Sequence record: NC_047713.1 | Length of the DNA: 64,000 nucleotides | Direction: 5' to 3' (one strand) | Part shown: piece after piece, positions 27,567 through 55,170 of the stretch | How positions within the stretch are numbered: the stretch's first letter is position 1 | How the letters are laid out: every line of letters starts with the position of its first letter | Position numbers and translations under genes: made by a program | Notes under the pieces: generated by a model | What the model was told of the DNA's origin: nothing | The model's input: the letters and a program-made list of their open reading frames with translations, nothing else | The model's database searches: none

Positions 27567-27657
27567 TGTGACAGTCACCAAACTGGCACAGGGGGTTGGC
27601 AAACCCCCTTTTTTGTGCTATAATAACAGGGTAGTCAAACAGAGAGGTTAGGTTCTA
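27567..27657 (+). promoter_or_regulatory. Early element copy 1
   Basis: tgtgacagt-caccaa-actggcaca; GGGGG-TTGGCA-AA-CCCCC-T-tract; TGC-TATAAT. Confidence 0.85.
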
Positions 27658-28008
27658 GTGGGTTTCCTGAAAGCTCTGTTTGCTACTGCCTTGGTGGGTA
27701 TTGTTGGTGTGGTGTCTCCCGCCGAGGCAAGTGTAGGTGGCAATATGTCTCCAGTCGTAGAGGGTATGTGTATAAAGTACACACCCTTTGGTGATTTGCC
27801 CTGTAAGATTAGAGTATACGATAGTGAAGAACTAGTGTATATTACAGATGGTCATAATACTATGACATATACCAAGCACCCATTCATACCATATGCGTGG
27901 ACAATGTATGTGAATGAACAACGGATATCTAATATGTTATGCTCCCTAGATAAGTATAACTTCTCTTGTTTCACCTCAATCCAATTTGTTCCTGATTATG
28001 AAAACTAA
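27658..28008 (+). CDS. Hypothetical exported protein
   Basis: Signal-peptide-like N-terminus ending AEA; follows an element. Confidence 0.65.
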   Translation: MGFLKALFATALVGIVGVVSPAEASVGGNMSPVVEGMCIKYTPFGDLPCKIRVYDSEELVYITDGHNTMTYTKHPFIPYAWTMYVNEQRISNMLCSLDKYNFSCFTSIQFVPDYEN

Positions 28009-28330
28009 ATCATTGATGCTCACCAGTTTGATGGTGGCAACGATAACCGCATCACCTGTCATGGCATACGGATATCGCCAACCATACTATCAACAACCCC
28101 CAGTTGTTATTCAACAGCCAGCACCTGTTATCATTCAACAACCAAGACCCAGTACCCTAGAAACTGTTTTGGGTATTGCAGTTATTGGTGCAGGTTTATA
28201 CTGGAATAGTCCAGCATATCAGAACGATCATGGATATTATAATGGAAATAGAAACCATCATCACAACCAATACCAAGGTGGCAAAACATATGTAATTTGT
28301 AATGATTACGGACGGAGGTATTACTGCTGA
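27998..28330 (+). CDS. Hypothetical exported protein, P/Q/Y-rich
   Basis: MKTKSLMLTSLMVATITASPVMA signal peptide; PPVVIQQPAPVIIQQP repeat. Confidence 0.65.
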   Translation: MKTKSLMLTSLMVATITASPVMAYGYRQPYYQQPPVVIQQPAPVIIQQPRPSTLETVLGIAVIGAGLYWNSPAYQNDHGYYNGNRNHHHNQYQGGKTYVICNDYGRRYYC

Positions 28331-28539
28331 TGGATTTTGTGGCATTTATGATTGATAAGGAAAACGCCTTATCACTGATACAATCACTTCACGAATCTGC
28401 CGATAAGTGTAGTAAAGATGGAAGACGAATTATGGAAGCAAACTATACCAAACTAGCAGACATGATGATGGAACAATACCTAGTATCAGAGAGTATCCAC
28501 AGGAAGAGAAAAAGAAATAACGGAGATTATATCGGCTAA
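28330..28539 (+). CDS. Hypothetical protein
   Basis: 69-aa ORF, translationally coupled on both sides. Confidence 0.6.
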   Translation: MDFVAFMIDKENALSLIQSLHESADKCSKDGRRIMEANYTKLADMMMEQYLVSESIHRKRKRNNGDYIG

Positions 28540-29111
28540 TGATTGACTATCTTACCATCCCTAATAGCTTATCAGACAAACTTTGTGACGACATCATTCA
28601 CAAGTTTGACAGTGATGATAGAGTTGATTATGGTAAAATTAATATGGGAGATGTTGATACTGAGGTCAAAAGATGTAAAGAGTTGTTCATATCAATCCTA
28701 GATAACTGGCGAGATCTTGACAATCAGGTATTCAATGCGTCGGTGAAAGGGTTAAGTCAATACCGTGAGTACATTAATGAGTTATACGATGCCGATTATC
28801 TTCTAGGATCAGATAATTCTGATCAAGGTTACCGGGTAAAGAGATACGATATTGGTGAAGATTACTTTCATTGGCATCATGATCTACGCATAGATGAAAA
28901 CCGTAGGATGAGATCAGTTGCCTTCATATGGTATCTAAATGATGTGGAAGAGGGTGGTGAAACAGAATTTAGTAATGGTCTAAAGATACGTCCAGAGAAA
29001 GGTAAACTACTTCTATTTCCATCTACATGGAACAACGTACACAGAGGGAATACACCAATAAGTAATACGAAGTATGCTATTACTAGTTTCCTCTATTCCT
29101 CCTACGATTAG
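28539..29111 (+). CDS. 2OG-Fe(II) oxygenase
   Basis: FHWHHD, WYLNDVEEGGETEF, LFPSTWNNVHRG. Confidence 0.9.
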   Translation: MIDYLTIPNSLSDKLCDDIIHKFDSDDRVDYGKINMGDVDTEVKRCKELFISILDNWRDLDNQVFNASVKGLSQYREYINELYDADYLLGSDNSDQGYRVKRYDIGEDYFHWHHDLRIDENRRMRSVAFIWYLNDVEEGGETEFSNGLKIRPEKGKLLLFPSTWNNVHRGNTPISNTKYAITSFLYSSYD

Positions 29112-29140
29112 GTGATATATACTAAGTATGGGATACTTCA

Positions 29141-29695
29141 GTGACAAAGGGTTATCAAATCAGGGGAGACTTTATTGCAAGTCTCATTAAACAACACGAC
29201 TGTAAGATTGGTTATGAAATTGGGGTATCCAATGGTGCAACTTTTGGTAAGATCTTAAAGAAATGTGATAATATTGAGTGGCATGGTGTAGATCCATGGG
29301 TTGTATGTTCCGAGTATGATAAACGCCCCAATGGTAAGGGTAAGTGGAATCATGATGCTAACTATGAGAAAGTTCAGGAGATTGTTAGTAAGTATCCAAA
29401 GCGTGCATATACCCACCGCATGACCTCTGTAGAGGCTGCAAAGGAGGTAGAGGATAGAAGTATTGATATTATCTTTATAGACGGTCTGCACACCTACGAG
29501 GGGGTGAAGGAAGATCTAGAGGCTTGGGTGCCAAAGATCAAAATAGGTGGTATAATCTCTGGACATGACTATAAAGGTATGAAGAGACATGAGGGTGTGA
29601 CTATACGAGTGAATGAAGTATTTGGTGAAGAAAACATTACTACTGGTCCAGATGTGACCTGGTGGTTATACAAAACGGAGGAACACGATGACTGA
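29141..29695 (+). CDS. Class I SAM methyltransferase (Methyltransf_24-like)
   Basis: YEIGVSNG; DIIFIDGLHTYEGV...IGGIISGHDY. Confidence 0.85.
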   Translation: MTKGYQIRGDFIASLIKQHDCKIGYEIGVSNGATFGKILKKCDNIEWHGVDPWVVCSEYDKRPNGKGKWNHDANYEKVQEIVSKYPKRAYTHRMTSVEAAKEVEDRSIDIIFIDGLHTYEGVKEDLEAWVPKIKIGGIISGHDYKGMKRHEGVTIRVNEVFGEENITTGPDVTWWLYKTEEHDD

Positions 29696-30449
29696 GGGTT
29701 ATGTTGTTATTGCACTTGGCGATAAGTATGTTCAACTCGCCAAGAACTTTGAAGATACACTAAGACAAAACGGTGACAATCGTCCTGTTCATGTTGTCAC
29801 TGAAGACATGATTGATAAGGATAATGATAAGTATAGGGACTGTGATGTTCCCAACGAAAGGTATAACTGCTACCCCAAACTTCACTTCAATGAGTATGCG
29901 ATATTTGATCATAGTATCCTAATCGATGCCGATGTTCTGTGCGTAGGTGATACCCAACACGTTTGGGATATGTGTAAAGAACAGGAACAGTTTATTCTTC
30001 ACCGTGGGTGGGGACAAGTTACTAAATGGAATAGAGAACTACAGAAGAAAGTGTGGGACGTTCATGGGTTCGTACCTCCTCGCATTCACGGAGCTTTCTG
30101 TTATCTAAGGAAGGCAGATATCAATGAAGACTTCTTTGAATTTATCCAAAATAATGTGTGGTTTCAGTATACTGAATGGTGTACGGAAGATGTCAAAGCA
30201 AGACATCACAGGTTAAGTAGATCAGACCAGGTGATATATGCTATTGGTTATGGTAAGTTTGATCTCATGCCCTGTCAGTTAATGGAAGTTCCTATTATGA
30301 CTCATATATTGACAGCGGCACACGTTAATCCTCCATACGATACAATCACTTTTAAGGATCAAATTGGACCCGATTTACAACATCCAGTGGCATTTGCCCA
30401 TATCGAACAACTATTTCAGGAGAGCACCCCAGAAAGTTTTCTAAGGTGA
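29688..30449 (+). CDS. Glycosyltransferase-like protein, GT-A fold
   Basis: EGYVVIALGDKY; YPKLHFNEYAIFDHSILIDAD (DxD motif). Confidence 0.7.
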   Translation: MTEGYVVIALGDKYVQLAKNFEDTLRQNGDNRPVHVVTEDMIDKDNDKYRDCDVPNERYNCYPKLHFNEYAIFDHSILIDADVLCVGDTQHVWDMCKEQEQFILHRGWGQVTKWNRELQKKVWDVHGFVPPRIHGAFCYLRKADINEDFFEFIQNNVWFQYTEWCTEDVKARHHRLSRSDQVIYAIGYGKFDLMPCQLMEVPIMTHILTAAHVNPPYDTITFKDQIGPDLQHPVAFAHIEQLFQESTPESFLR

Positions 30450-30529
30450 CAGTCCACAAACTGGCACACAGGGCTTGGCAACCCTCCAAAAAGGTGCTAT
30501 ACTATCTAAGTAACCAAAGGAAATGATTT
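30445..30529 (+). promoter_or_regulatory. Early element copy 2
   Basis: ggtgacagt-ccacaa-actggcaca; TTGGCA; TGC-TATACT. Confidence 0.85.
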
Positions 30530-30751
30530 ATGAAACCAGCAGAAATTCTCTACGAAATGCAATCCATTCGTAAAGTCTGGCATAATAATAATTTCGTTAT
30601 CAGTCCCGAACTAAACCGTCGCTATTGTGAACTTCTTAAACTCCGCCGTGAACGAGTTTCTCAATTCTATAAAGAGGGAAGGGTCGCTACAGGATCACAG
30701 ACCCCCGACCTCAAAGCCCGAGAAGCAGCCAGACAAGCCGAGGTTGGTTGA
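30530..30751 (+). CDS. Hypothetical early protein
   Basis: ATG after element leader with AAGGA RBS. Confidence 0.7.
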   Translation: MKPAEILYEMQSIRKVWHNNNFVISPELNRRYCELLKLRRERVSQFYKEGRVATGSQTPDLKAREAARQAEVG

Positions 30752-31362: not shown

Positions 31363-31560
31363 ATGACTACTGACCCAAACGATAAGTACGCTAAGTTCAA
31401 AGTACCATTTGGCACTAATGAACATCACGAAGATGATGAATGGGATCCCACAACTGAGGGTAAAATCTCTGATTGGCACAACCGACATCAAGATAAACTC
31501 TTAGATGAGTTTTGTGACACTCACCCAGGCGCACCCCAGTGTAAGGTGTTTGACGATTAA
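31363..31560 (+). CDS. cp12: CP12 Calvin-cycle inhibitor (AMG)
   Basis: C-terminal FCDTHPGAPQCKVFDD matches the CP12 C-x8-C-x2-(Y/F)DD motif; AGGAG RBS; CTAAATA at 31335. Confidence 0.88.
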   Translation: MTTDPNDKYAKFKVPFGTNEHHEDDEWDPTTEGKISDWHNRHQDKLLDEFCDTHPGAPQCKVFDD

Positions 31561-31612
31561 CAAAGTGGCACAAGACCACTTGACAGTACCACATTATTAG
31601 GTTACAGTACAT
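31549..31612 (+). promoter_or_regulatory. Early element copy 3 (degenerate left arm)
   Basis: tttgacgat-taacaa-agtggcaca; TTGACA-17-TACAGT. Confidence 0.65.
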
Positions 31613-31801
31613 TTGTTCAAGAGGTTTCTCATGACTACCGTTGTTGATTCAGAGGTTATCTTTGCTGACGCTTTCAGTGAAGATGGTATAGACTACGGAA
31701 CTGGTTATTATGTAACTAAGTTCTATAGCAATGGTATGACCGACCTATTTGGACCATACAATTTTGAGGAAGACGCCCTCAATCTTGCCACTGTTTATTG
31801 A
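31613..31801 (+). CDS. Hypothetical early protein
   Basis: Short acidic ORF; alternative ATG at 31631. Confidence 0.55.
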   Translation: MFKRFLMTTVVDSEVIFADAFSEDGIDYGTGYYVTKFYSNGMTDLFGPYNFEEDALNLATVY

Positions 31802-32626: not shown

Positions 32627-32873
32627 ACTATATACTACAGACAATTATTCAGGTACAATGAACCTAACTGAACATCAAAAGATTCAACTCTCACAATTTA
32701 TTCATGAGTCGTTCTCTACATTCTATGAGGAGGAACTAAAGTTTCAAGTAGAAACTCTAAAAGATGATGATAAGTTGGATTGGACTTATACAATCACACC
32801 AAGAGACTCAGGGGAGATTTATGATAAGGTTCAGGAATTATTCACACTGGAAAGGCGTGTGACAGTAGAATAA
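32616..32873 (+). CDS. Hypothetical early protein
   Basis: Overlapping ATG; ends V-T-V-E inside the next palindrome. Confidence 0.6.
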   Translation: MMSKLYTTDNYSGTMNLTEHQKIQLSQFIHESFSTFYEEELKFQVETLKDDDKLDWTYTITPRDSGEIYDKVQELFTLERRVTVE

Positions 32874-32938
32874 GTGACACAAGGGGGTTGGCAAACCCCC
32901 TTTTTGCTGCCATAATATACTCATACACACAAAGACCC
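32858..32938 (+). promoter_or_regulatory. Early element copy 5
   Basis: tgtgacagt-agaata-agtgacaca; GGGGG-TTGGCA-AA-CCCCC; TGC-CATAAT. Confidence 0.85.
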
Positions 32939-33067
32939 ATGAACGTCCCCAACTGGCAGAAGCACTCCAAGAAAGACCAGAAGGGTCGCGGAGTGAGCAA
33001 GGGTCAGATGAGAGCCCGCAAACAGGCTCTACGTGCCCTAAAGGCAAAGCTCCTTGTGACAGTCTAG
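32939..33067 (+). CDS. Small basic protein (42 aa; absent from track)
   Basis: MNVPNWQKHSKKDQKGRGVSKGQMRARKQALRALKAKLLVTV, lying exactly between two elements. Confidence 0.75.
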   Translation: MNVPNWQKHSKKDQKGRGVSKGQMRARKQALRALKAKLLVTV

Positions 33068-33137
33068 GAAGTGGCACAAGCCCCCTAGGCAAGACCCTCA
33101 AACCCTGCTATACTAAACACATACAAAGGAAACCACC
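33055..33137 (+). promoter_or_regulatory. Early element copy 6
   Basis: tgtgacagt-ctagga-agtggcaca; TAGGCA; TGC-TATACT. Confidence 0.88.
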
Positions 33138-33551
33138 ATGGCTCGTCACTCTGAAGTTCTCATCCAAGGCACCGAGGTTCCCGGTCTTCGCATGATCGTA
33201 ACCGTTCCAGTCGATCACACCTGGGCATCAGAAACCGCCGAGAGCATCTATGGATTTGGTGGCAACACCCAATATATCTGGCGGAAGTCTTGGGAGACTA
33301 ACCAACCCGCCCCCCGTGGTGGTGGTTCCTCCTCCTCCTCTGGCATGGGTCCTGGAGCTATCCTGATGGGGATGATTGGTCTTATCCTGGTTGCTGGTAT
33401 TGGTTCCGCCTTCGAGGGTAACGACACCCCCTCAGCTCCTTCCTATGACGCTCCCGCACCTGTTGAGAGGACATATGTTCCACAGGCACCAGCAGCAACA
33501 TCCTCCTACGATAACGGTCCTTGCCTCACAGCTAACTTTGAACCTTGTTAA
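33138..33551 (+). CDS. Hypothetical membrane protein
   Basis: One TM segment (AILMGMIGLILVAGIGS) and a P/A-rich C-terminal part. Confidence 0.7.
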   Translation: MARHSEVLIQGTEVPGLRMIVTVPVDHTWASETAESIYGFGGNTQYIWRKSWETNQPAPRGGGSSSSSGMGPGAILMGMIGLILVAGIGSAFEGNDTPSAPSYDAPAPVERTYVPQAPAATSSYDNGPCLTANFEPC

Positions 33552-36038: not shown

Positions 36039-36237
36039 AGAAGATCCAATGATTAACTGGAAACAGAAGATGATTGAGCAGTGTGATGTAAACGGAATTG
36101 AAAAGCAACTATTACGTGAAGGTGCTACGTCATCTGTGACAGCAATGGGCATAATGTCACTAAAGAAACGATACAAAAGGATTATGGGTATTGATGATGA
36201 TCCAAAGCCACCTGTAGTCCAATATGCCTCATATTGA
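36028..36237 (+). CDS. Hypothetical protein
   Basis: 69-aa ORF; stop lies in the next palindrome arm. Confidence 0.6.
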   Translation: MMTEEDPMINWKQKMIEQCDVNGIEKQLLREGATSSVTAMGIMSLKKRYKRIMGIDDDPKPPVVQYASY

Positions 36238-36317
36238 CACCTGAATAACTGGCACAAGGGGGGTAGGCACCCCCCTTTTTTGTGCCATAATACAGAGGTA
36301 AACAACGGGAACCACCC
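36233..36317 (+). promoter_or_regulatory. Early element copy 7
   Basis: attgacacc-tgaata-actggcaca; GGGGGG-TAGGCA-CCCCCC-T-tract; TGC-CATAAT. Confidence 0.82.
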
Positions 36318-36695
36318 ATGCAACTACCTACCCCCCTGCTAAACAGAGGTTACACTATAAACGGCAATACTGCCAGTAGGGTATATCAGCACGGTTTTAG
36401 AGTAGAGTTAGAGGCACTAACTACCCTAAACATGCCCATAGGTTTACTAAACTATATTATAAACGAAAACGATATAGAGTGCCCCTGGGCACCAGCAGAT
36501 GTAGAGCAGTTTGATACTATCTGGCACTATACTGTTACAGATATTAGAGGTGAGATACTAGATAATACATATGGTTTTATAACCTATTATATGTTTGATA
36601 CTCTCAGAGAGATACATAACACACTAACAGATATTACAGTAGATAATGCGTTAGATATTATGAATGGCACATCTGAACTATATGCCACCTGCTAA
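36318..36695 (+). CDS. Hypothetical early protein
   Basis: 125-aa single-gene cassette between two elements. Confidence 0.7.
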   Translation: MQLPTPLLNRGYTINGNTASRVYQHGFRVELEALTTLNMPIGLLNYIINENDIECPWAPADVEQFDTIWHYTVTDIRGEILDNTYGFITYYMFDTLREIHNTLTDITVDNALDIMNGTSELYATC

Positions 36696-36762
36696 ACTGG
36701 CACAGGGGGGCTAGGCACAGCCCCCTACACCTGCTATACTAAACACATACCAAACCAATACT
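36681..36762 (+). promoter_or_regulatory. Early element copy 8
   Basis: tatgccacc-tgctaa-actggcaca; TAGGCA; TGC-TATACT. Confidence 0.82.
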
Positions 36763-40400: not shown

Positions 40401-40402
40401 GA

Positions 40403-46044: not shown

Positions 46045-46093
46045 GCAAACCACCCCACACCTGCTATACTAAACACATACCAAACAAAGAACC
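46011..46093 (+). promoter_or_regulatory. Early element copy 19
   Basis: tgtgacacc-tcagga-agtggcaca; TAGGCA; TGC-TATACT. Confidence 0.87.
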
Positions 46094-46375
46094 ATGAATT
46101 TCAAGTCCTTCCTTCTCTCCTCTCTCATCGTTACCACTGGGCTAGTAGCTTCAGCACCAGGAGCCAAAGCCGCTGAATGTTTCAATGGTGATGGATATCG
46201 GGTTTGTATGGAGAGCTTAGGCATGAATCGTTGGGAAGTATCCTTCGAGAACAACCATGGCTCAGAGTTTATGGAGGTTCAGTGTATTGGCAAGAGTGTG
46301 AGTGATTGGACCTCACGGGGTGATTTGAGTCAGTCTGAAGCACAGTATCTCGCAGAGGAATTCTGTTCCTGGTAA
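46094..46375 (+). CDS. Exported Cys-containing protein
   Basis: MNFKSFLLSSLIVTTGLVASAPGAKA signal peptide; four Cys. Confidence 0.72.
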   Translation: MNFKSFLLSSLIVTTGLVASAPGAKAAECFNGDGYRVCMESLGMNRWEVSFENNHGSEFMEVQCIGKSVSDWTSRGDLSQSEAQYLAEEFCSW

Positions 46376-46408: not shown

Positions 46409-46567
46409 ATGTTTGTATCCTTCACTGAAATCCAAGACTACATTCGCGAAGACCAATACACATATAGTGAGCGTCAGTTCCGCTCACGCAAATACAACAA
46501 AAACGAACGTCGTTATCAGCGTCGTCAGAAGCAACAACAAAGAGAACGCAACTACGATAGCGTGTGA
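46409..46567 (+). CDS. Small R/Q-rich protein (52 aa)
   Basis: MFVSFTEIQDYIRE...; TGA in the next palindrome. Confidence 0.6.
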   Translation: MFVSFTEIQDYIREDQYTYSERQFRSRKYNKNERRYQRRQKQQQRERNYDSV

Positions 46568-46646
46568 CAGTTGGAGAAGTGGCACACGCTTCTCCACAAA
46601 CCCCTCAGGGGGTGCTATACTATATTCATACCAAAGGGAACCACCC
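46563..46646 (+). promoter_or_regulatory. Early element copy 20
   Basis: tgtgacagt-tggaga-agtggcaca; GGAGAAGTG/CGCTTCTCC hairpin; TGC-TATACT. Confidence 0.9.
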
Positions 46647-46871
46647 ATGACCACCACCACTCCAAACCTCTACAACGAAGCTATCCGTCGTTTGGCTGAC
46701 GGGTTCTCCTCAGAGTTCGCTGAGTTCTGTGCAGGAGACGAGAGGGTTCACGAGATCATGATGGAACTCGCTAGTGAGTTCGTAGAAACCAATATCCCTG
46801 TAGTGAGTGAGGACAGCCAGACTGACGTGGCATCTGAGCTCCTCATGAGTATCACAGTCACCAAGGTGTGA
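46647..46871 (+). CDS. Hypothetical early protein
   Basis: ATG 46647 after the element; the track's longer ORF spans the element and is an artefact. Confidence 0.7.
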   Translation: MTTTTPNLYNEAIRRLADGFSSEFAEFCAGDERVHEIMMELASEFVETNIPVVSEDSQTDVASELLMSITVTKV

Positions 46872-46951
46872 CAGTCTAGGAACTGGCACAAGGGGGGTTG
46901 GCAACACCCCCCAAAACCTCTATACTAAACACATACCAAACAACCCAGACC
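46867..46951 (+). promoter_or_regulatory. Early element copy 21
   Basis: tgtgacagt-ctagga-actggcaca; TTGGCA; TATACT. Confidence 0.88.
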
Positions 46952-47500
46952 ATGAACTTCAAGAAACTCCTCCTTTCCACTCTCGCACTTGGTTCAGTTG
47001 TAGCCCCTTCAGCAAACGCTGGTTATACCTATGAGGGTTATCACTTGATGGATGGTTCTGACTTTCCTGGTTATGAGAGAGTGGCAACCCCAATGATTCA
47101 GGCTCTCAATGAAATGGGTGTTCCTGTTGTTGATGGTGGTAAGAATAACGTAGAAATGTGTATTCCTGAAGAGGAAAAGATGACTCTTGGTTTCTACGTT
47201 CCAGCATCCAATGTGATGGTTATCTGCACCAAGTCTATCCCAGGTTGGCTCCAGATGGAGACACTTACCCACGAAACAGTTCATGTCATCCAAGACGCAA
47301 GAGCTGGTATTGATAACGGAGATTTGGGAGAGGCACCAACCGATCACCTTATCACCCTCGCTAATGAGATGGATCCCGATAAGATGAATATCATCTACAG
47401 CCTCTACGATGAGTCTGATTACGCAGTAGAGATTGAAGCTTTCTACTTTGAAACAGAACCCCAGGCGGTTATGAATGAGATCCAGAAGTGGGCATTCTGA
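46952..47500 (+). CDS. Exported zinc-metallopeptidase-like protein (HEXXH)
   Basis: MNFKKLLLSTLALGSVVAPSANA signal peptide; LTHETVHVIQD; downstream EIEA. Confidence 0.7.
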   Translation: MNFKKLLLSTLALGSVVAPSANAGYTYEGYHLMDGSDFPGYERVATPMIQALNEMGVPVVDGGKNNVEMCIPEEEKMTLGFYVPASNVMVICTKSIPGWLQMETLTHETVHVIQDARAGIDNGDLGEAPTDHLITLANEMDPDKMNIIYSLYDESDYAVEIEAFYFETEPQAVMNEIQKWAF

Positions 47501-48447: not shown

Positions 48448-48759
48448 ATGAAACGCTACGGACTTTATTGGCTGAGAGCTATCACCCTAGGTGCTGGGCT
48501 AAACTTTGTTCTGACTGGTTATCTCATGGGTCACCAAAAGTGGAAGTTTCAACATGCAGCTCCACTCTCAGCGTTTATCTGTGTGAATCTATCGTATGTG
48601 GCGGATCGTCTTATCTTTGGTGATAAGAAGGAACCTGAAGATTTAGATCCAGATACTATTGTTATATCAACCCCACACTGTTGCCCCGTATGTTCAGAGT
48701 ATCCTTGCACTTGTGACAGTTGGGAAAGTGGCACAAGTCCCCTAGGCAACACCCTCTGA
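48448..48759 (+). CDS. Hypothetical two-TM protein with Cys-rich tail
   Basis: Two hydrophobic segments; CCPVC..YPCTC; reads into the next element. Confidence 0.55.
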   Translation: MKRYGLYWLRAITLGAGLNFVLTGYLMGHQKWKFQHAAPLSAFICVNLSYVADRLIFGDKKEPEDLDPDTIVISTPHCCPVCSEYPCTCDSWESGTSPLGNTL

Positions 48760-48795
48760 ACCTGCTATACTAAACACATACCAAAGGAACCAACC
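48712..48795 (+). promoter_or_regulatory. Early element copy 22
   Basis: tgtgacagt-tgggaa-agtggcaca; TAGGCA; TGC-TATACT. Confidence 0.88.
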
Positions 48796-48993
48796 ATGAA
48801 AGTCTCTCAGGAAGTTTTCAAGAGTTACATTCAGATACTGGATGAAAACACACAAACATCATGGGATATCCTAAATGTTTTGAATGATATTGTTAGAGGT
48901 GACTGGGATAACTCAGTCCAGTATTGTTTGGAAAATCCATCAGGCGACCCTATGGATGATTTCAACTACGCAGGCAGTCGCCACCACTATTGA
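48796..48993 (+). CDS. Hypothetical early protein
   Basis: 65 aa after the element. Confidence 0.65.
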   Translation: MKVSQEVFKSYIQILDENTQTSWDILNVLNDIVRGDWDNSVQYCLENPSGDPMDDFNYAGSRHHY

Positions 48994-49276: not shown

Positions 49277-49561
49277 ATGACACGCACTCCAATGACAGTC
49301 ACCCTCAAGCGTAGCGAATGGGAATGTTATACAGACACTCCTGATACTATCATCGAAACCATCAACACATACTTCTCTTATGTGTTATCAACTAAAGATA
49401 ACGCGTTTGATGCACAAGCTGAGATATTTAAGTTTATGGGTATGTTTAGTGAGTTTGGGTTTATGGATAGTGAGTGCCTAGAATGTGCAACTAGAGTTAT
49501 CAACAGATATTTCGATTCATACCTCTCCCGATGGAGCCAGGTGGGTGATGTGACAGTCTAG
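49277..49561 (+). CDS. Hypothetical protein
   Basis: 94 aa; ends V-T-V in the next palindrome. Confidence 0.65.
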   Translation: MTRTPMTVTLKRSEWECYTDTPDTIIETINTYFSYVLSTKDNAFDAQAEIFKFMGMFSEFGFMDSECLECATRVINRYFDSYLSRWSQVGDVTV

Positions 49562-49634
49562 GAACTGGCACACGCTTCTCCGCAAACCCCTCAGGGGGTG
49601 CTATACTATATTCATACCAAAGGAACCAACCCCC
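49549..49634 (+). promoter_or_regulatory. Early element copy 23
   Basis: tgtgacagt-ctagga-actggcaca; TGC-TATACT. Confidence 0.88.
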
Positions 49635-49988
49635 GTGAACTTCAAGTCTTTAGCACTCTCTTCAGTTATCGCCGTTTCCTCTATCTTTGGAACCGTATCA
49701 GGAGCTGAAGCAAAACCCGCCAATTGCTGGTTTGAAGATCAAACAACACCCATCACAGCCGCCAACTGTAACATCACTAAAATGTATCATGATGGATCTA
49801 TCTTTGATTGGGTTGGCACCTACTTCCTTGTCAGTGAGTTGGGAGCACTAATCTACCTGAAAGACAACGGAACCTTTATCGCAGAACCTATCAATGGTGA
49901 TCCAGAGGAGTACGGAACCTGGCGTTATGATCATGAGGGTGATATTCAAATGAGGATGGGAGGAACTTACTTTACCTTCCGAGTGTGA
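49635..49988 (+). CDS. Exported Cys-pair beta protein (paralog of 37618-37968)
   Basis: MNFKSLALSSVIAVSSIFGTVSGAEA signal peptide; CWF...C; WRYDHEGD...RV. Confidence 0.7.
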   Translation: MNFKSLALSSVIAVSSIFGTVSGAEAKPANCWFEDQTTPITAANCNITKMYHDGSIFDWVGTYFLVSELGALIYLKDNGTFIAEPINGDPEEYGTWRYDHEGDIQMRMGGTYFTFRV

Positions 49989-50067
49989 CAGTTGAGGAAG
50001 TGGCACACGCTTCCCCCAAAACCCCTCAGGGGGTGCTATACTATATTCATACCAAACAAGGAAACCA
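49984..50067 (+). promoter_or_regulatory. Early element copy 24
   Basis: tgtgacagt-tgagga-agtggcaca; TGC-TATACT. Confidence 0.88.
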
Positions 50068-50334
50068 ATGTTCCCACACCTCCACATCTCTGAATCAAAC
50101 CTCGGACCTCACACCTCCATGTTTTTCAAAGTATCATCACAACCACAAGATGAGTGGCAGAATGGCATTTTCCATAACTCACCTTATGGCATCTTTCACC
50201 TTCATTCTGAGAAAGGTGTTTATAAGTTGGAACTATCTTCCTCAGGTTTGAATACTCCTAAGTTTCGCAAGTGTAAGTGTGAAGATGAACTTACCGCACT
50301 CACTAAGATTCGTCAGTGGATGGATAAGTTCTGA
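50068..50334 (+). CDS. Conserved phage hypothetical protein
   Basis: DEWQNGIFHNSPYGIF...KFRKCK. Confidence 0.7.
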   Translation: MFPHLHISESNLGPHTSMFFKVSSQPQDEWQNGIFHNSPYGIFHLHSEKGVYKLELSSSGLNTPKFRKCKCEDELTALTKIRQWMDKF

Positions 50335-50369: not shown

Positions 50370-50543
50370 ATGAACCGACTAGAACTACTGACCCAACGTG
50401 AACAACTGATGGAGAGGATTGACTCTATCTGTGATGAATTCTTTTATAAGAACTATAATGGAGATACGTCAGAAGCAGATGAATTAGTTCGTATTCTATG
50501 TGATGCTGTTTGTGAAACCATAGACCCAGCGGGCATGGTGTGA
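50370..50543 (+). CDS. Small hypothetical protein (57 aa)
   Basis: MNRLELLTQREQLMERIDSIC...; TGA in the next palindrome. Confidence 0.65.
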   Translation: MNRLELLTQREQLMERIDSICDEFFYKNYNGDTSEADELVRILCDAVCETIDPAGMV

Positions 50544-50622
50544 CAGTTGGACTAGTGGCACAAGCTTCTCCGCAAACCCCTCCTCACCTGCTATACTATA
50601 TTCATACCAAAGGAAACCGACC
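50539..50622 (+). promoter_or_regulatory. Early element copy 25
   Basis: tgtgacagt-tggact-agtggcaca; TGC-TATACT. Confidence 0.88.
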
Positions 50623-50886
50623 ATGTTCCAAGTCTGTATTGAAGATTCACTAGATCACCGTCATACAGTTGATGAGTTTGAGACTCTGGAAGAAGCACAA
50701 GAGTGTTATAACGAGTGTTTGAAGATTGGTCCTGAGGGTTATGAACTCTCTGTTGAGTTAGAGCAAGTTATTGGCGACCATGATGATTATATTTCAATTG
50801 ATTTCACCGAGTGGTTTACACAAGAGGAGTGGGATGTGGCTCATCCATGGAATGAGAAGGAAGGAGTATGGGAAAACATAGACTGA
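50623..50886 (+). CDS. Hypothetical acidic early protein
   Basis: 87-aa single-gene cassette. Confidence 0.7.
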   Translation: MFQVCIEDSLDHRHTVDEFETLEEAQECYNECLKIGPEGYELSVELEQVIGDHDDYISIDFTEWFTQEEWDVAHPWNEKEGVWENID

Positions 50887-50970
50887 TGTGACAGTTGGAG
50901 AAGTGGCACACGCTTCTCCGCAAGACCCGCCTCACCTGCTATACTATATTCATACCAAAGGGAACCACCC
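50887..50970 (+). promoter_or_regulatory. Early element copy 26
   Basis: tgtgacagt-tggaga-agtggcaca; GGAGAAGTG/CGCTTCTCC hairpin; TGC-TATACT. Confidence 0.9.
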
Positions 50971-51261
50971 ATGACCACCAACACCCTCATCAGACTCGGC
51001 ACTCTCGGTTTTGGGGCTTTCGCAATGACGGTTAACCTGGCACCCATGAGCACTCCGGTCGTTCCTCTCCTTTCCCAACTTACTCCAGTTTACGCTGAGG
51101 TCACTCAGTTTGACAACAGCCAATACAAGTTTGTTTCTCATCAGGAGTTTGTTTTCATGAATAAAACAAGAGAGAACGCACTAGAAGAAATTGATAAAAT
51201 TGTGGAAGACTTTGAGCGTGAGATCGATGAAGCTTTCTCACCAGACAACTTTCGTTTCTGA
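50971..51261 (+). CDS. Hypothetical protein, copy 1
   Basis: 96 aa with a hydrophobic N-terminus. Confidence 0.65.
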   Translation: MTTNTLIRLGTLGFGAFAMTVNLAPMSTPVVPLLSQLTPVYAEVTQFDNSQYKFVSHQEFVFMNKTRENALEEIDKIVEDFEREIDEAFSPDNFRF

Positions 51262-51270
51262 TAGGGGGCT

Positions 51271-51356
51271 TGTGCCACCTAAATAAGTGGCACACGCTTC
51301 CCCGCAAGACCCGCCTCACCTGCTATACTATTCACATACCAAACAAAGGAAACCAA
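51271..51356 (+). promoter_or_regulatory. Early element copy 27
   Basis: tgtgccacc-taaata-agtggcaca; TGC-TATACT. Confidence 0.85.
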
Positions 51357-51611
51357 ATGACCACCACCCAAACCAAAACCGAGTTCCTCACCGAGGCAAT
51401 GATCGAACAGGTGAACAACCTCTGGAAGGTTTATAACGTGGAGTCAGGTCACACCATCACCCCACTCCTTAAGTATGAAGTGGCTAAGAAGTATATCAAG
51501 GTCTATCGTCTTGATGTTGTCAATGGTGAGATTAAGGGAACCACCCATGACCACCAACACCCTCATCAGACTCGGCACTCTCGGTTTTGGGGCTTTCGCA
51601 ATGACGGTTAA
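51357..51611 (+). pseudogene. Truncated/chimeric copy of 51933-52274
   Basis: Identical up to ...VNGEI, then switches at the duplication junction to KGTTHDH... Confidence 0.8.
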
Positions 51612-51837: not shown

Positions 51838-51846
51838 TAGGGGGCT

Positions 51847-51932
51847 TGTGCCACCTAAATAAGTGGCACACGCTTCCCCGCAAGACCCGCCTCACCTGCT
51901 ATACTATTCACATACCAAACAAAGGAAACCAA
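51847..51932 (+). promoter_or_regulatory. Early element copy 28 (duplicate of 27)
   Basis: Within the tandem duplication. Confidence 0.8.
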
Positions 51933-52274
51933 ATGACCACCACCCAAACCAAAACCGAGTTCCTCACCGAGGCAATGATCGAACAGGTGAACAACCTCTG
52001 GAAGGTTTATAACGTGGAGTCAGGTCACACCATCACCCCACTCCTTAAGTATGAAGTGGCTAAGAAGTATATCAAGGTCTATCGTCTTGATGTTGTCAAT
52101 GGTGAGATTCGTGACGGTCGTTCTGTGTTTATGTTTATCGATAAGGAGACTGGAGCAGTTCTGAAACCAGCCAGTTGGAGAGCACCCGCTAAGGGTATCC
52201 GGTTCTACATTGAGTCGTTGGCAGAGAACCCTGAGCTGGTTGATCAATACGGTTCATTCCTCTACCGTCGCTGA
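51933..52274 (+). CDS. Conserved phage hypothetical protein
   Basis: KKYIKV...VFMFIDKETG.VLKPASWRAPAKGIR pattern. Confidence 0.75.
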   Translation: MTTTQTKTEFLTEAMIEQVNNLWKVYNVESGHTITPLLKYEVAKKYIKVYRLDVVNGEIRDGRSVFMFIDKETGAVLKPASWRAPAKGIRFYIESLAENPELVDQYGSFLYRR

Positions 52275-52356
52275 TGTGACAGCCACCAAGGTGGCACAGG
52301 GGGGCTAGGCAGCTCCCCTTCCTTATGCTATACTATATTCATACCAAAGGACCCCG
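52275..52356 (+). promoter_or_regulatory. Early element copy 29
   Basis: tgtgacagc-caccaa-ggtggcaca; TAGGCA; TGC-TATACT. Confidence 0.85.
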
Positions 52357-53610
52357 ATGACTCTGACCCTTCGCCCCCACCAAACTGAAGCTCTTCAGGC
52401 GATGGCTCAGACCCGTCTAGGTCAGATCCTTGTACCCACTGGTGGTGGTAAGACATTGATTGCCATCATGGATGTTGTGAGGACCCTGGAGACCGCACAG
52501 ACCCCTCAGACCATCGTTGTGGTTGCTCCTCGTATCCTTCTAGCTCAGCAACTCTGTAGTGAGTATATGGAGGTTCTGAGCGACCAGTTCGCTAATATCA
52601 TTCCCGCCCATATTCACTCAGGTCATACACCTCACTTTTCTACCACTAACATTCAGAAGATTCATCTTTTCGAGAAGATGATGGATACCGCCAACCTCCA
52701 TCGCATATATTTCACCACATACAACTCACTTCCACGTTTAGCAGAAGCAGGTGTAAGTGTCGATGCTATTATGTTCGACGAAGCACATAACTCTACTCGT
52801 AATGACTTCTATCCCGCTACCAAGTATTTCTCACAGACCGCTAGTCGTTGTTACTTCTTTACAGCAACTCCCCGTCACTCGGTAACATCCAAGAGACACG
52901 GAATGAACGAGTCTGATGTATACGGACAGGTCATCTATAATGTTCCCGCTCCTACACTTGTACAGGGTGGGTTCATCATCCCCCCTCAGGTTCTTGTTAA
53001 AGAGATGGAGTTCGTAGCTAAACATGAGCTCATCTCACAACGTGATACAAACCACCTCATCTCTTGCATTGATGATAACAACACGAGCAAAGTTCTAGTT
53101 TGTGCTAAATCTGTCAAACAGATCATGCGTATGTTTAGTGAGACCGATATCAGCCAACAACTTGATGATCGTGGTTTCTCCTATATGTACATCTCAGCTA
53201 AGACTGGTGGTGTTATCAATGGTAAGAAAGTATCACGTACTATGTTCTTCGATACTCTAAACGAGTGGGGTAAGGATAACAACAAGAAGTTCATTGTTCT
53301 TCATCATTCTATTCTCTCTGAAGGTATCAACGTAAGTGGTTTGGAGTCCGCTATCTTCTTACGTACCATGGATCATATTACTATCTCCCAAACGATTGGA
53401 CGTGTGATAAGACTTCACAAAGACGATGCCCAAGGTATGAGAGATGGTTCGATTCGCCCCGGTGATCTTAACTCCTATACTAAGTCCTTTGGTTTGTGTA
53501 TTGTTCCAGTTTATTCTAAGACACAACAAACCGTTGCTAAGTCTCTTCAAGCAGTTGTCAATACCGTCTTTGTTGAAGGTGAAGCAGCAACCACAGTTGT
53601 GAGGCGTTAG
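52357..53610 (+). CDS. SF2 DEAH-box helicase (type III restriction Res-like)
   Basis: LRPHQ Q-motif, PTGGGKT, FDEAH, FTATP, LSEGINV, QTIGRVIR. Confidence 0.92.
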   Translation: MTLTLRPHQTEALQAMAQTRLGQILVPTGGGKTLIAIMDVVRTLETAQTPQTIVVVAPRILLAQQLCSEYMEVLSDQFANIIPAHIHSGHTPHFSTTNIQKIHLFEKMMDTANLHRIYFTTYNSLPRLAEAGVSVDAIMFDEAHNSTRNDFYPATKYFSQTASRCYFFTATPRHSVTSKRHGMNESDVYGQVIYNVPAPTLVQGGFIIPPQVLVKEMEFVAKHELISQRDTNHLISCIDDNNTSKVLVCAKSVKQIMRMFSETDISQQLDDRGFSYMYISAKTGGVINGKKVSRTMFFDTLNEWGKDNNKKFIVLHHSILSEGINVSGLESAIFLRTMDHITISQTIGRVIRLHKDDAQGMRDGSIRPGDLNSYTKSFGLCIVPVYSKTQQTVAKSLQAVVNTVFVEGEAATTVVRR

Positions 53611-53611
53611 T

Positions 53612-53740
53612 ATGAATTATCAAAACCAAGCTCTTGTGATACTTCTAGGTCTAATGATCATAGCTGGTATTAACGTACTTCACTACGAACAACAATGGCA
53701 ATGTAGGATGCATCGATCCTATTGTTTTGTTTCTGAATAA
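53612..53740 (+). CDS. Small membrane peptide (42 aa)
   Basis: MNYQNQALVILLGLMIIAGINVL... Confidence 0.45.
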   Translation: MNYQNQALVILLGLMIIAGINVLHYEQQWQCRMHRSYCFVSE

Positions 53741-54429
53741 TACCATAAGTAACCCTTCCAACGCGAACCCCATTTGATTGAAGTACAGATACCTTTGCCA
53801 CGATCCTCCTCATTAAAGGATCTCATCGCATCACTAATAGAGTCAAAGACGGGAGTAACATGACCAGTCTTATGAACTCCATAGACTTGTTTCTTATTCT
53901 TAGCGTGTTTATGAATCCACCATTTGTAACCATATGCCGATCCCTCTCTTGTGATACTTCTCCTGATATTTGATGGCCTACCATTCACAAACTCAGCGGC
54001 AGCAACCCAACCGTGAAAGGTCTTTATCTTACCCGTTTCCAAGCACCTACACTTGATCACGTTCTTATCATGTTTCTTAGGTTTCTTCTTCCTTTGATAA
54101 CCCCAACGCCTATCCCCTTTATGATATGACTCTTTATTATTGAGCTTCCTGGTAGTATGCTCCATCACTAAAACGTTGTATTCAGGTTGATACTTATTCA
54201 TCCAATATTCCATCCTCTCTTTAACCTTATTCTCATTCACTTCTTCTAGTATCCGTATAGTGAAGTCATCGGAGTTATAGTAAGATAAGGCATTTGATAA
54301 GGGAGTATTTTCCTCCTTATGATTTCTAAGGATACGAGCCCAAACTTTATTCAAGGGAAGCGTATCATAACCGATGTATTTGTGAGAGGTTTGTCTATTC
54401 AAGATGATGTAGATGTTTATGATGCTCAC
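53719..54429 (-). CDS. GIY-YIG-type homing endonuclease with two NUMOD1-like domains
   Basis: NIYIILNRQTSHKYIG; later ILEE..E; KTFHGWVAAAEFV...AYGYKW and VFDSISDAMR...WKGYLW. Confidence 0.75.
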   Translation of the reverse strand: MSIINIYIILNRQTSHKYIGYDTLPLNKVWARILRNHKEENTPLSNALSYYNSDDFTIRILEEVNENKVKERMEYWMNKYQPEYNVLVMEHTTRKLNNKESYHKGDRRWGYQRKKKPKKHDKNVIKCRCLETGKIKTFHGWVAAAEFVNGRPSNIRRSITREGSAYGYKWWIHKHAKNKKQVYGVHKTGHVTPVFDSISDAMRSFNEEDRGKGICTSIKWGSRWKGYLWYYSETKQ

Positions 54430-54842
54430 GGAAGATACTCTCTATTCTGGTTGTATATATAAGTATTGTTTTATTTTATCACATGTGCCTGTTTATCTCC
54501 CTTATGAATGTTATAATAGAAAGGAAGAGATAAAGACATATATTCAACTGAATCATCTAAGAGAAGGTAACACTAATCCCCTATACAATAACCCAATAGA
54601 AAGTGATCTAATAGAAGGTAATCATATAGAGGAAGGTTAATAGAAAGCCCTATAGAAAGCCCCTTATAATAGTATCATATAAAGAGGTCTTTAAGTTGCT
54701 CTAAGTCTCACTGGAAACCTACCTGCCCGTTGAACCTAAACCTCCCTGCCCGTTGCAACCTAAGCCCGTTATAACACGGGACTTCGGAAAAGTCAAGGGA
54801 TCTCCGAAAAACTTAATATTTCTCCCCTCCCCCCTGGACTCC

Positions 54843-54926
54843 TGTGCCAATTCCCAAACTGGCACACAAAAGCCCGCAGACCCCCCGAAATGGCATATAC
54901 TATATTCATACCAAAGGGAACCACCC
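54843..54926 (+). promoter_or_regulatory. Early element copy 30
   Basis: tgtgccaat-tcccaa-actggcaca; TATACT; standard leader. Confidence 0.82.
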
Positions 54927-55073
54927 ATGGCTAAGATCACCACCCAGACCCGTTACACCAGCCAGGTAGCCCAGGACCGTAAGGCAGCAGCACTCCAGAG
55001 GGCTGAGGAGCGTCGCCTCACGGGTTCTGCCGACGTGGATCAGGTGAACCGCCTCTACACTCAGGCACTCTGA
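54927..55073 (+). CDS. Small hypothetical early protein (48 aa)
   Basis: MAKITTQTRYTSQVAQDRKAAAL...; true start follows the element. Confidence 0.65.
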   Translation: MAKITTQTRYTSQVAQDRKAAALQRAEERRLTGSADVDQVNRLYTQAL

Positions 55074-55170
55074 TAACTGGTACACACCCCCTAGGCATCA
55101 CCCCCTCTATACCCTATAATATAGAGGTAGGGGGGGAAACCACTCTACACTCACTCTAAACTCTCTAAAC
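55061..55170 (+). promoter_or_regulatory. Early element copy 31 (degenerate, long leader)
   Basis: actggtaca; TAGGCA; TATAAT. Confidence 0.7.

Follow-up and report, generated by a model that had tools for sequence, protein, structure and literature searches.

An early-promoter unit of about 85 bp, present in about 29 copies, partitions the early region of Synechococcus phage ACG-2014f_Syn7803C8, a T4-like cyanomyovirus, into small gene cassettes. The window analysed is bases 1-64000 of the full genome (223 kb), and the array occupies 27.5-55.2 kb, where 29 copies stand among 86 mostly hypothetical ORFs; the remaining 190 kb has three copies only, upstream of cobS, psbA and gp217. With the 24-bp pattern, two or fewer mismatches and both strands, 47 matches were found versus 0.04 expected. 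The strict plus-strand copies number 23 and span 27567-54866, and when degenerate and right-arm-only copies are included there are 29 elements at 27567-55173, every one of them on the plus strand. An earlier reading made from the letters of the DNA (the sequence-only reading) had given about 30 copies, 29 with the right arm, all on the plus strand and many bracketing a single ORF, and these statements hold, exactly one ORF being present in 13 of the 29 element-to-element intervals; its array coordinates (27567-55170) are also correct, the final element running up to the gp106 ATG (55171). The elements are as follows.

27567..27660, plus strand: element 1, upstream of gp024; after the palindrome TGTGACAGTCACCAAACTGGCACA come a GC stem whose loop holds TTGGCA, T6 (terminator-like), TGCTATAAT and a GTG start
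30445..30532, plus strand: element upstream of gp030; left arm with one mismatch
31549..31633, plus strand: degenerate element upstream of gp034; right arm AAAGTGGCACA only, then TTGACA
32858..32941, plus strand: element upstream of gp039; right arm TGACACA; GC stem and T5, terminator-like
33055..33140, plus strand: element upstream of gp040
36233..36320, plus strand: element upstream of gp052; GC stem and T6
36681..36765, plus strand: element upstream of gp053
37499..37620, plus strand: element upstream of gp057; variant -10 TATCTT; long leader that starts with the hairpin GTGGAGGGG..CCCCCCAC
39184..39293, plus strand: element upstream of gp061; perfect-arm palindrome; hairpin leader
39744..39831, plus strand: element upstream of gp063; the 2.4-kb deletion in KJ019148 has its left end here
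40060..40151, plus strand: element upstream of gp064; lacks the left arm; a GC stem spans TTGGCA
40403..40488, plus strand: element upstream of gp065
42223..42307, plus strand: element upstream of gp070; the 2.4-kb deletion in KJ019148 has its right end here
43371..43457, plus strand: element upstream of gp072
45566..45655, plus strand: element upstream of gp081; degenerate arms; GC stem and T-run
45785..45870, plus strand: element upstream of gp082; right arm only
46011..46096, plus strand: element upstream of gp083
46563..46649, plus strand: element upstream of gp085
46867..46954, plus strand: element upstream of gp086
48712..48798, plus strand: element upstream of gp090
49549..49637, plus strand: element upstream of gp093; two different gp093 replacements are bounded on the left at 49623-49629
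49984..50070, plus strand: element upstream of gp094; the gp093 replacements are bounded on the right at 49978-49982
50539..50625, plus strand: element upstream of gp096
50887..50973, plus strand: element upstream of gp097; in relatives, an 880-bp deletion and a replacement have their left ends here
51271..51359, plus strand: element upstream of gp098; within the first copy of a 576-bp tandem duplication
51847..51935, plus strand: element upstream of gp100; identical to the 51271 copy; right end of the 880-bp deletion
52275..52359, plus strand: element upstream of the helicase gene gp101
54843..54929, plus strand: element upstream of gp105; 272-328 bp insertion in relatives at the leader/ATG (54896-54940)
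55061..55173, plus strand: last element, degenerate (TGGTACA), upstream of gp106; long leader

Each copy has the same order of parts, namely the palindrome, 29-30 nt, a -10 of the TGn-extended type (TATACT), a short leader that contains a ribosome site (AAGGA or AGGGA) and the ATG. The start of TGGCACA precedes TATACT by 36-37 nt in nearly all copies, and the distance from the -10 to the ATG is 28-35 nt. The sequence-only reading had described a TGC-TATACT -10, and a TGn-extended -10 (TATACT or TATAAT) is indeed found in 27 of the 29 copies, but other parts of its description are only partly upheld. The distance from the start of the site to the ATG, put at 82-89 bp, is nearly fixed (81-91 bp in 26 of 29 copies), with outliers at 37499 (119), 39184 (107) and 55061 (110). 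The GC hairpin placed over the -35 position is a stable stem with a -35-like hexamer in its loop in nine copies only and is absent from the other 20; four further copies have a different spacer stem (CCCCTCAGGGGG), and a stem with dG of -8 or lower is found in 13 of 29, with a terminator-like T-run in only four. The -35-like hexamers TTGGCA, TAGGCA and TAGACA lie at 17 bp in about half of the copies, the rest having CCGCAA or CCACAA. All four combinations of sub-modules occur within the elements, and the stop codon of the upstream ORF often falls within the element, either as TG[TGA]CA or as a TAG in the spacer. The promoter role proposed earlier agrees well with this anatomy, fixed as it is in 29 copies: each copy is very probably a self-contained early-gene promoter unit, a promoter plus leader at the head of a gene cassette.

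Marine viral contigs contain the motif in abundance, and across 514 unique copies from about 120 of these other contigs conservation is confined to the palindrome TGTGCCAsTT-N4-AAsTGGCACA, its rigid spacing and the -10; a conserved -35 was sought in the same 514 copies and none was found. One multi-copy contig, L084, was checked and proved to be a relative of S-SSM7 and similar T4-like cyanophages. This wider consensus has a 10-4-10 geometry, which displaces the 9-6-9 arrangement originally described. The arms are spaced by N10 in 327 of 327 copies, and the -10 starts 29 or 30 nt past the palindrome in 258 of 542 copies, as counted by orientation with each palindromic site taken on both strands. 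The suggestion that the site is a dimeric operator fits this constant spacing, together with the fixed -10 distance and the keeping of sequence over pairing. Since there is no conserved -35 and the distance from palindrome to -10 is rigid, the palindrome may be read as an activator site; its centre, near -53.5, is at neither the classical class I nor the class II activator position.

Searches for the strict site in genomes gave 55 matches, 17 of which are cyanobacterial and none of which is in a named marine Synechococcus or Prochlorococcus genome. In 10 of 12 tested cyanobacterial loci the site is about 40 nt upstream of the Rfam Cyano-1 RNA, which is the Yfr2 family (PMC8400943), in the layout palindrome-N30-TATTCT. 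Among 31 yfr2 promoters from genome and metagenome loci, 21 have the palindrome at the matching offset with six or fewer mismatches, nine with zero mismatches, and its presence at yfr2 promoters spans many cyanobacterial orders. The palindrome-to-core geometry at Nostocales yfr2 is as in the phage. The GC-rich yfr2 loci have the half-site GTGACAGTT as in the phage, but in everted order, and marine-type yfr2 promoters have everted half-sites that adjoin each other (CAAC TGTCAC A GTGACA GTTG), whereas those of the phage are inverted with N4 between them; the inverted form occurs at yfr2 genes of non-marine cyanobacteria. The Prochlorococcus protein PMM1637 (GntR/PlmA-type) binds and activates the yfr2 promoter palindrome, as seen by pull-down, EMSA and GFP reporter (PMC6191309). 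Because the phage palindrome is shared with yfr2 promoters and PMM1637 binds there, the phage early promoters may depend on a host factor, and we tentatively suggest a host PlmA-type regulator as the most likely reader of the phage site. Two traits of PlmA-type promoters, fixed -10 phasing and a poor -35, are present in the phage-type sites, and activator dependence would be a third. A host regulator may thus switch the phage early genes on.

A different reader, either a non-PlmA host factor or a phage protein (virion-delivered or made early), for example a repressor acting at the early-to-middle switch, seems rather unlikely, although it has several points in its favour. PlmA is a reader whose identity we infer, the yfr2 promoters of the marine hosts arrange their half-sites otherwise, and the phage has many small early proteins of unknown function, as well as a 'transcriptional regulator' (gp281) that lacks a Pfam match; in addition, the two S positions of the palindrome prefer the same base, a heterotypic preference that a symmetric dimer would not predict and that is odd for a homodimer. 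Against this, yfr2 promoters have the site in uninfected cells of many cyanobacterial orders, where some host protein must be reading it, and a PlmA-type GntR protein is the only factor shown to bind a yfr2 promoter palindrome (PMC6191309). The lack of a -35 points to activation that starts at time zero, and a position upstream of -40 would be unusual for a repressor.

It is very unlikely that the palindrome works by forming a hairpin, in RNA or single-stranded DNA, where the upstream transcript has its 3′ end, whether as a terminator, a stabiliser or an RNase site. The upstream ORF does have the palindrome at its 3′ end, several copies reach folding energies of -9 to -12 kcal/mol, and four elements have a true terminator-like stem and T-run just downstream of it, but most phage copies contain an A-G mismatch and fold weakly (-3 to -6.6 kcal/mol), and the palindrome also stands ahead of host yfr2 genes, at places where no ORF terminates. 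In about 400 copies the mirrored positions avoid complementarity, pairing less than expected, with 104 Watson-Crick pairs observed at the S positions versus 182 expected (Fisher 4e-16); what is conserved is sequence rather than pairing, and the spacing to the -10 varies by no more than 1 nt. Since mirrored bases vary against complementarity, the palindrome is predicted to be a protein-binding site in duplex DNA, and not a hairpin.

Gene gain, loss and replacement were located by comparison with seven close relatives of about 45, the events being collapsed by coordinate and not by phylogeny. Twenty of 37 indel or replacement breakpoints are 15 bp or less from an element, against an expectation of 11 % by base coverage (p=2e-10) or of 28/85 (33 %) by gene junctions (p=0.006), and the earlier proposal of PeSL-like shuffling, for which breakpoints in relatives should coincide with elements, is thus strengthened. 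Left breakpoints of one insertion and one replacement in KJ019146/150/059 lie at 36235-36292 in the gp052 element, and the right breakpoint (36695) of a 3.1-3.5 kb replacement falls within the palindrome of the gp053 element. Junction homology at the elements is 41-84 bp: 41 bp of leader (39254-39294) in the gp061 element flank a 227-bp insertion in relatives, 74 bp are shared at the junction of the KJ019148 deletion, which runs from the gp063 to the gp070 element, and 83 bp at the 880-bp deletion between the gp097 and gp100 elements. Three relatives have a one-ORF cassette insertion with a copy of the whole gp065 element (84 bp) on either side, and in KJ019146 an inserted 0.6-kb cassette is likewise bracketed by 81 bp of the gp081 element. 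Of the 576-bp tandem duplication, the first copy is 50958-51533, its end at 50958 being within the leader of the gp097 element, and relatives have an insertion, a deletion and a replacement at the gp106 element. The homology ends (36240, 36258, 36292, 36695, 39254, 49623/49629, 49978/49982, 54896, 55086 and 55167) are scattered over the arms, the -35/-10 spacer, the leader and the ATG. Insertions in the relatives include one cassette of an element plus an ORF and one solo element, which sits between two genes; two further events are element-associated in the coordinates of the relative. The 17 breakpoints away from elements include four homing-endonuclease indels and several unexplained events, and one off-element deletion was mediated by a different short intergenic repeat that has no palindrome. 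The phage encodes the general recombination genes UvsX, UvsY, UvsW and gp46/47. We consider it likely, from these genome comparisons, that homologous recombination between elements shuffles the cassettes in the manner of PeSLs.

The sequence-only reading had also raised an integron-like array, in which a tyrosine or other site-specific recombinase would cut and rejoin the palindrome and the cassettes would move as circles, and in spite of the cassette-like layout, the imperfect palindrome at each boundary and the precise element-to-element deletions and insertions, with a solo element inserted between two genes, this is highly improbable, for the search that it called for found no integrase or recombinase, by annotation, among the 287 annotated features of the 223-kb genome, the crossovers are in the palindrome, -35/-10 spacer, leader and ATG and not at one position, the junction homology covers the whole element (74-84 bp), a palindrome-free short repeat mediates deletion equally well, the palindrome is conserved in sequence and also stands before a host sRNA gene, which is no cassette, and every cassette bears its own promoter. 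Conservation of a folded single strand of the attC type was likewise rejected, as sequence is conserved, pairing is avoided and the cassettes are promoter-bearing.

The overall explanation that we favour, with somewhat more confidence than doubt, is that of early-promoter units read by a host factor and shuffled by PeSL-type homologous recombination. The 24-bp site would bind a dimeric transcription factor, for which we propose a host PlmA-type regulator, at about -65 to -42 (as reckoned from the -10), and as an activator site it would recruit host RNA polymerase immediately upon entry of the DNA into the cell; the unit would be completed by a -35 that is weak or absent, the TGn-extended -10, a leader of 20-25 nt containing a ribosome-binding site, and the ATG. 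Since a unit of about 85 bp recurs about 29 times in one orientation, the homologous recombination machinery of the phage (UvsX, UvsY, gp46/47) would pair different copies and so delete, insert, duplicate or replace the ORFs between them, each ORF moving with the promoter in front of it while the next element supplies its stop codon.

Several known systems resemble this array in part. The PMM1637-responsive CGRE1 element of yfr2 promoters in marine picocyanobacteria is likewise a palindrome, about 21-24 bp long, that lies upstream of the -35 position in a promoter that relies on an activator, and the half-site GTG(A/C)CAGTT of GC-rich yfr2 promoters is identical to the phage arms, but the marine yfr2 half-sites are everted and adjacent where those of the phage are inverted with N4. 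By its published description (position -55 to -57, with a GTGATCAC-like centre), CGRE1 has no obvious match to the everted motif found here. Its authors state that it is restricted to picocyanobacteria, and the word 'phage' is in the reference list only of their paper (Lambrecht 2018, PMC6191309).

In the early region of phage Syn9 (43-52 kb, just before gene 25), the motif TGTG(A/C)CA..-N..-GTG(G/T)C(C/A)AC is found upstream of the -10 boxes that belong to small early ORFs, with variants upstream of gp55, 63, 68, 73, 75, 78 and 79. An early-gene regulatory element has reportedly been described for Syn9 and other T4-like cyanophages (Weigele 2007; Doron 2016), and the motif is presumably that element, in line with the relation to Syn9 suggested by the sequence-only reading. 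The right arm in Syn9 is mostly GTGTCCAC, one base longer than GTGGCAC, and the ACG-2014f array is much denser and more uniform, its conserved leader included. Integron attC arrays are similar in being one-directional, with small ORFs separated by imperfect palindromes. Integron cassettes have a dedicated recombinase, one exchange position and fold-conserved sites, and are promoterless; the phage array differs in that no integrase is annotated, there is no single crossover point, sequence and not fold is conserved and there is a promoter per cassette.

Close parallels are with PeSL (promoter-early stem-loop) cassettes, known from the T4-like phages RB49/phi1, T4/PST and KVP40/nt-1 (Arbiol 2010; Comeau 2014, PMC4122927). 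A high density of PeSL-like units was not described for cyanophages in the literature searched, and S-PM2 is said to lack it (PMC4503421). The two share a repeated composite of a sigma-70-type early promoter, Shine-Dalgarno sequence and start codon, clustered in a hyperplastic region where it flanks small ORFs of unknown function, and in both the indels and replacements of close relatives are at the units, with homologous recombination as the proposed mechanism. Exchange between nearby PeSL units also gives rise to mini-circles. The stem-loop/terminator that defines PeSLs, where it overlaps the promoter or lies just before it, is present in 9-13 of the 29 phage copies, with a T-run in four, while the constant upstream module of the phage unit is a 24-bp palindrome of the protein-binding type, which PeSLs lack, and its -35 is weak or absent.

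The window sequence is identical to bases 1-64000 of KJ019058 / NC_047713 (223,270 bp), the genome of the T4-like cyanomyovirus ACG-2014f_Syn7803C8 (Kyanoviridae), and the array region, flanked by the tail-fibre genes on one side and the gene 25/6 baseplate genes on the other, comprises about 85 small genes on the plus strand, most of them hypothetical. The repeat array proposed from the sequence alone is real: the 24-bp palindrome pattern has 47 matches, counting both strands, against 0.04 expected, the strict plus-strand copies number 23 (27567-54866), and with degenerate and right-arm-only copies included the total is 29 elements, every one of which is on the plus strand. TGGCACA starts 36-37 nt upstream of TATACT, the TGC before TATACT makes an extended −10, and the ATG lies 28-35 nt downstream of the −10. 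The near-constant distance from site to ATG also stands, at 81-91 bp from the palindrome start in 26 of 29 copies, as does the bracketing of single ORFs, seen in 13 of the 29 element-to-element intervals; the stop codon of the upstream ORF is often within the element, as TG[TGA]CA or as TAG in the spacer. The GC hairpin said to lie over the −35 position is a feature of only some copies, since a stable stem with TTGGCA or TAGGCA in its loop is present in only 9 of 29 and another spacer stem in four more; a T-run that would make a terminator is found in only 4 of 29. A hairpin with TGGCACA in the loop, formed by pairing of spacer GGGGAAG/GGAGAAG with downstream CTTCCCC/CTTCTCC, does not appear to be a selected structure, as it occurs in only four of the nine copies of that spacer subtype, the rest being recombinant combinations.

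Three elements have longer leaders beginning with a GC hairpin (GTGGAGGGG..CCCnCCAC, about −11 kcal/mol), and in other viral contigs this leader type is found behind 11 of the 503 palindrome-promoter copies among the matches listed. Two segments are unusually long for regions with no annotated gene, and are GC-rich, hairpin-containing and variable among relatives; Rfam finds nothing in them, and a search of the whole window found no Rfam family.

37565-37617, plus strand, long leader
39250-39290, plus strand, long leader
55127-55170, plus strand, long leader
55540-55802, long segment with no annotated gene
55995-56449, long segment with no annotated gene

Scans with the motif beyond the window, as the sequence-only reading had suggested, found it in many marine viral contigs. 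The rest of the phage genome has just three further copies, all distant from the early array, and the metabolic genes behind them therefore share an early-type promoter.

genome 113935 (outside the window), element upstream of cobS
genome 154735 (outside the window), element upstream of gp217
genome 169157 (outside the window), element upstream of psbA

The strict 24-mer was found in more than 120 IMG/VR viral contigs among the matches listed, often in several copies per contig, and S-SSM7-type cyanomyoviruses are relatives of one such multi-copy contig (L084). The −10 boxes in the Syn9 early region, which has the equivalent genome position, are preceded by the variant TGTG(A/C)CA..GTG(G/T)C(C/A)AC, and we take the phage promoter motif to be, most likely, the 'novel early regulatory element' of Syn9, although the motif letters were not found in the literature searchable here. 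When 514 unique viral-contig copies (among the matches listed) were anchored only on the right arm and a −10-like box, the left arm emerged strongly, giving the consensus TGTGCCAsTT-N4-AAsTGGCACA. Among these listed copies the −10 begins 29 or 30 nt after the palindrome, with no conserved bases and no −35 in between. A purine followed by T, 6 nt past the −10, is likely to be the start site, which would place the palindrome at about −65 to −42.

The palindrome could in principle act as a folded strand or as a site in duplex DNA; a folded strand would be expected to preserve pairing between mirrored positions, and the viral-contig copies show the reverse. At its two G/C-degenerate positions, 8 and 17, the matches listed have G..G (141) and C..C (118) versus G..C (57) and C..G (47), such that Watson-Crick pairs are observed 104 times versus 182 expected (Fisher 4e-16); all inner mirrored pairs are likewise under expectation, and most palindrome copies of the window phage have an A-G mismatch and fold weakly. 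A hairpin was rejected on the basis of this anti-covariation of mirrored positions. Because the letters are conserved, the arm spacing is rigid (N10 in 327 of 327 listed copies), the −10 phasing is fixed and pairing is avoided, the data point to a predicted duplex-DNA site read by a protein, in keeping with the operator-type reading originally offered. A sigma-54-like reading of TGGCAC fails on its spacing to any GC element, and sigma-54 is not known from cyanobacteria. The same base is favoured at positions 8 and 17 on one strand in viral contigs (L006-L125), as GG or CC, and therefore exactly one arm holds the 7-bp mini-palindrome GTGnCAC.

The proposal that elements delimit exchangeable gene cassettes was examined by setting 25-62 kb of the window against the corresponding segment in seven of the about 45 ACG-2014f genomes (95-99 % identity), with chained BLAST hits, inspected junctions and a hand-curated list of breakpoints for events of at least 100 bp. 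Gain and loss breakpoints do coincide with elements: by statistics that ignore kinship, 20 of 37 lie within 15 bp of an element, where 11 % is expected by coverage (p=2e-10), and the excess persists relative to the gene junctions that bear elements (28 of 85, p=0.006), and within the dense array alone (20 of 29 breakpoints versus 24 of 55 junctions, p=0.005). The following events are representative.

39744 and 42223, elements joined by a 2.4-kb deletion with 74 bp of shared sequence
40401-40484 and 45569-45649, one-ORF cassette insertions in which the whole element is duplicated
49549 and 49984, elements bounding two different replacements of gp093
gp052, replaced by 3.1-3.5 kb including methyltransferase and helicase genes, its ends falling within the two palindromes and a promoter spacer

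Of the events counted as lying away from elements, two prove to be linked to one when the relative's sequence is considered. The first is a lone element of 97 bp, complete with palindrome, terminator-like stem, promoter and leader, between the gp068 and gp069 homologues of two relatives (KJ019150, L131, 20028-20112, corresponding to window 41980-41989); in the window phage these two genes overlap (ATGA). The second is a cassette of element plus ORF.

Among the other events are four indels of homing-endonuclease genes (three HNH, one GIY-YIG), one deletion between copies of a CCACACTAACTAAC repeat and several more, and free-standing homing-endonuclease genes account for most of the non-element indels.

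38530-38997, HNH gene gp060, missing in five relatives
50325-50370, HNH gene insertion in KJ019059
57661, GIY-YIG gene insertion in KJ019100
57937, HNH-like gene insertion in KJ019150 and KJ019059

The CCACACTAACTAAC repeat is a promoter-less intercistronic sequence (..CCACACTAACTAAC..ATG) present at 48994-49038 and 49246-49290, and also at 39260-39290; in four relatives gp091 has been deleted between copies of it, and the homology at the junction is 44 bp. The break at 51533 is the edge of a perfect 576-bp tandem duplication (50958-51533 = 51534-52109), which starts or ends within the element 50887 leader at one side and within an ORF at the other. It created gp098/gp099, and KJ019100, KJ019148 and KJ019101 do not have it.

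Two mechanisms of exchange were considered. An integron-like array moved by a tyrosine recombinase was suggested by the form of the palindrome; however, no site-specific recombinase is annotated in the phage genome, the ends of homology are scattered along the element (in the arms, the −35/−10 spacer, the leader and the ATG), and the CCACACTAACTAAC repeat, which is not the element, works equally in a deletion. Sub-modules within elements are present in all four combinations, and the annotated recombination genes are UvsX, UvsY, UvsW and gp46/47. The junctions indicate that exchange is homologous, between dispersed repeats, as proposed for the promoter-early stem-loop (PeSL) cassettes of T4-like phages, and is not integron-type; the enrichment of breakpoints at elements and the scatter of homology ends along them uphold the earlier comparison with PeSL shuffling.

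When a stricter consensus was run against prokaryotic genomes, one for each species, it matched 55 stretches, 17 of them cyanobacterial, which is a strong excess because cyanobacteria make up only about 1-2 % of prokaryotic species. Matches in Acidobacteriota, Ktedonobacter and Bacillota are probably unrelated or due to chance, since a search beside them for an autoregulated regulator gene found no consistent neighbour. In Nostocales, Cyanothece, a Synechococcales MAG and others, the palindrome lies in a non-coding stretch and is followed by 30 nt, TATTCT and GTGTGTGAGGAG.., and at 10 of 12 cyanobacterial loci tested the Rfam Cyano-1 RNA begins about 40 nt past it. Cyano-1 is the Yfr2 sRNA family (PMC8400943). 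With further yfr2 loci taken from a metagenome scan for yfr2 genes, the palindrome was found at the same offset, with at most six mismatches, in 21 of 31 recognizable yfr2 promoters, nine of the 21 having none. The yfr2 promoters of Prochlorococcus and marine Synechococcus contain a palindrome, CGRE1, that is bound and activated by PMM1637 (Lambrecht et al., 2018, PMC6191309), a PlmA-type GntR regulator of a kind shared by all cyanobacteria (PMC6191309).

Four GC-rich yfr2 loci were Rfam-confirmed at 52-58 bits, and three of them (L214, L232 and L274) have CAAC-TGTCAC-A-GTGACA-GTTG upstream of yfr2, with only a partial copy in the fourth (L210). In its length of 21 nt, its palindromic form and its GTTG/CAAC 13 nt apart, the motif agrees with the description of CGRE1, although the stated position and centre of CGRE1 have no obvious fit to it; it is likely, though not certain, to be CGRE1. 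Its half-site is the same as that of the phage arms (GTGACAGTT) but in everted order. The everted host-type form AACYGTCAC-N-GTGACRGTT also occurs in 22 viral contigs (L310-L331), once per contig and, for several of the contigs, in conserved intergenic contexts; one of them (L318) resembles a cyanophage and carries tRNAs together with a wcaG RNA. A parallel between GTTG versus GTTA after the left arm and low-light versus high-light CGRE1 was discarded, as the base tracks neither and the share of A is 12-14 % at most, whichever GC class is taken.

The argument is weakest where it concerns the reader of the site: we infer that cyanomyovirus early promoters use a yfr2-type host activator site, with PlmA as the leading candidate. 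Phage-encoded candidates were set aside, gp158 ('DNA binding protein') being a pyrimidine-dimer glycosylase, gp190 a sigma-70-family factor, and gp281 having no Pfam match. At genome 137139-137831 (23139-23831 of locus L003), outside the window, the phage encodes a factor of the sigma-70 family in which Pfam recognizes regions 2 and 4; the genome also encodes the gp55 late sigma. We suggest tentatively, as a proposal that may well prove wrong, that copies of an ancestral yfr2 promoter drive the whole early gene set of T4-like cyanophages, that the palindrome is a predicted PlmA site through which the metabolic state of the host would gate first transcription, and that the same unit would serve as substrate for the shuffling of early genes among phages that infect a cell together.

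How transcription begins in T4-like cyanophages, which do not have the MotA/AsiA system of T4, is understood only in part, and as far as we found no host activator for their early promoters is named in the literature. The PlmA-type regulator has links with PII-PipX signalling as well as with nitrogen and light stress, and if it reads the palindrome, early infection would be wired into host nitrogen and light signalling. The known PlmA-type target site would also extend past marine picocyanobacteria, the same palindrome heading yfr2 in Nostocales, Cyanothece and others. The interest is chiefly that the question of what switches on cyanophage early genes becomes directly testable with the EMSA and reporter assay established on the yfr2 promoter. 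With approximately 45 ACG-2014f genomes sequenced, nature has provided an experiment in PeSL-type, promoter-mediated modular shuffling in a cyanophage, which would explain the turnover of the ORFan-rich early region.

Neither a dense PeSL-like array in any cyanophage nor a link of the cyanophage early motif to yfr2 or PlmA is described in the literature searchable here; Gregory 2016 has nothing on promoters or cassettes, and the word 'phage' is absent from the text of Lambrecht et al. (2018; PMC6191309), reference list aside. Cyanophage S-PM2 is reported to be without dense PeSLs (PMC4503421). Homologous recombination between units is the mechanism proposed for PeSLs (PMC4122927), and the phage unit works likewise, although its constant module is an operator-type palindrome whereas that of the PeSL is the stem-loop, which in this phage is optional.
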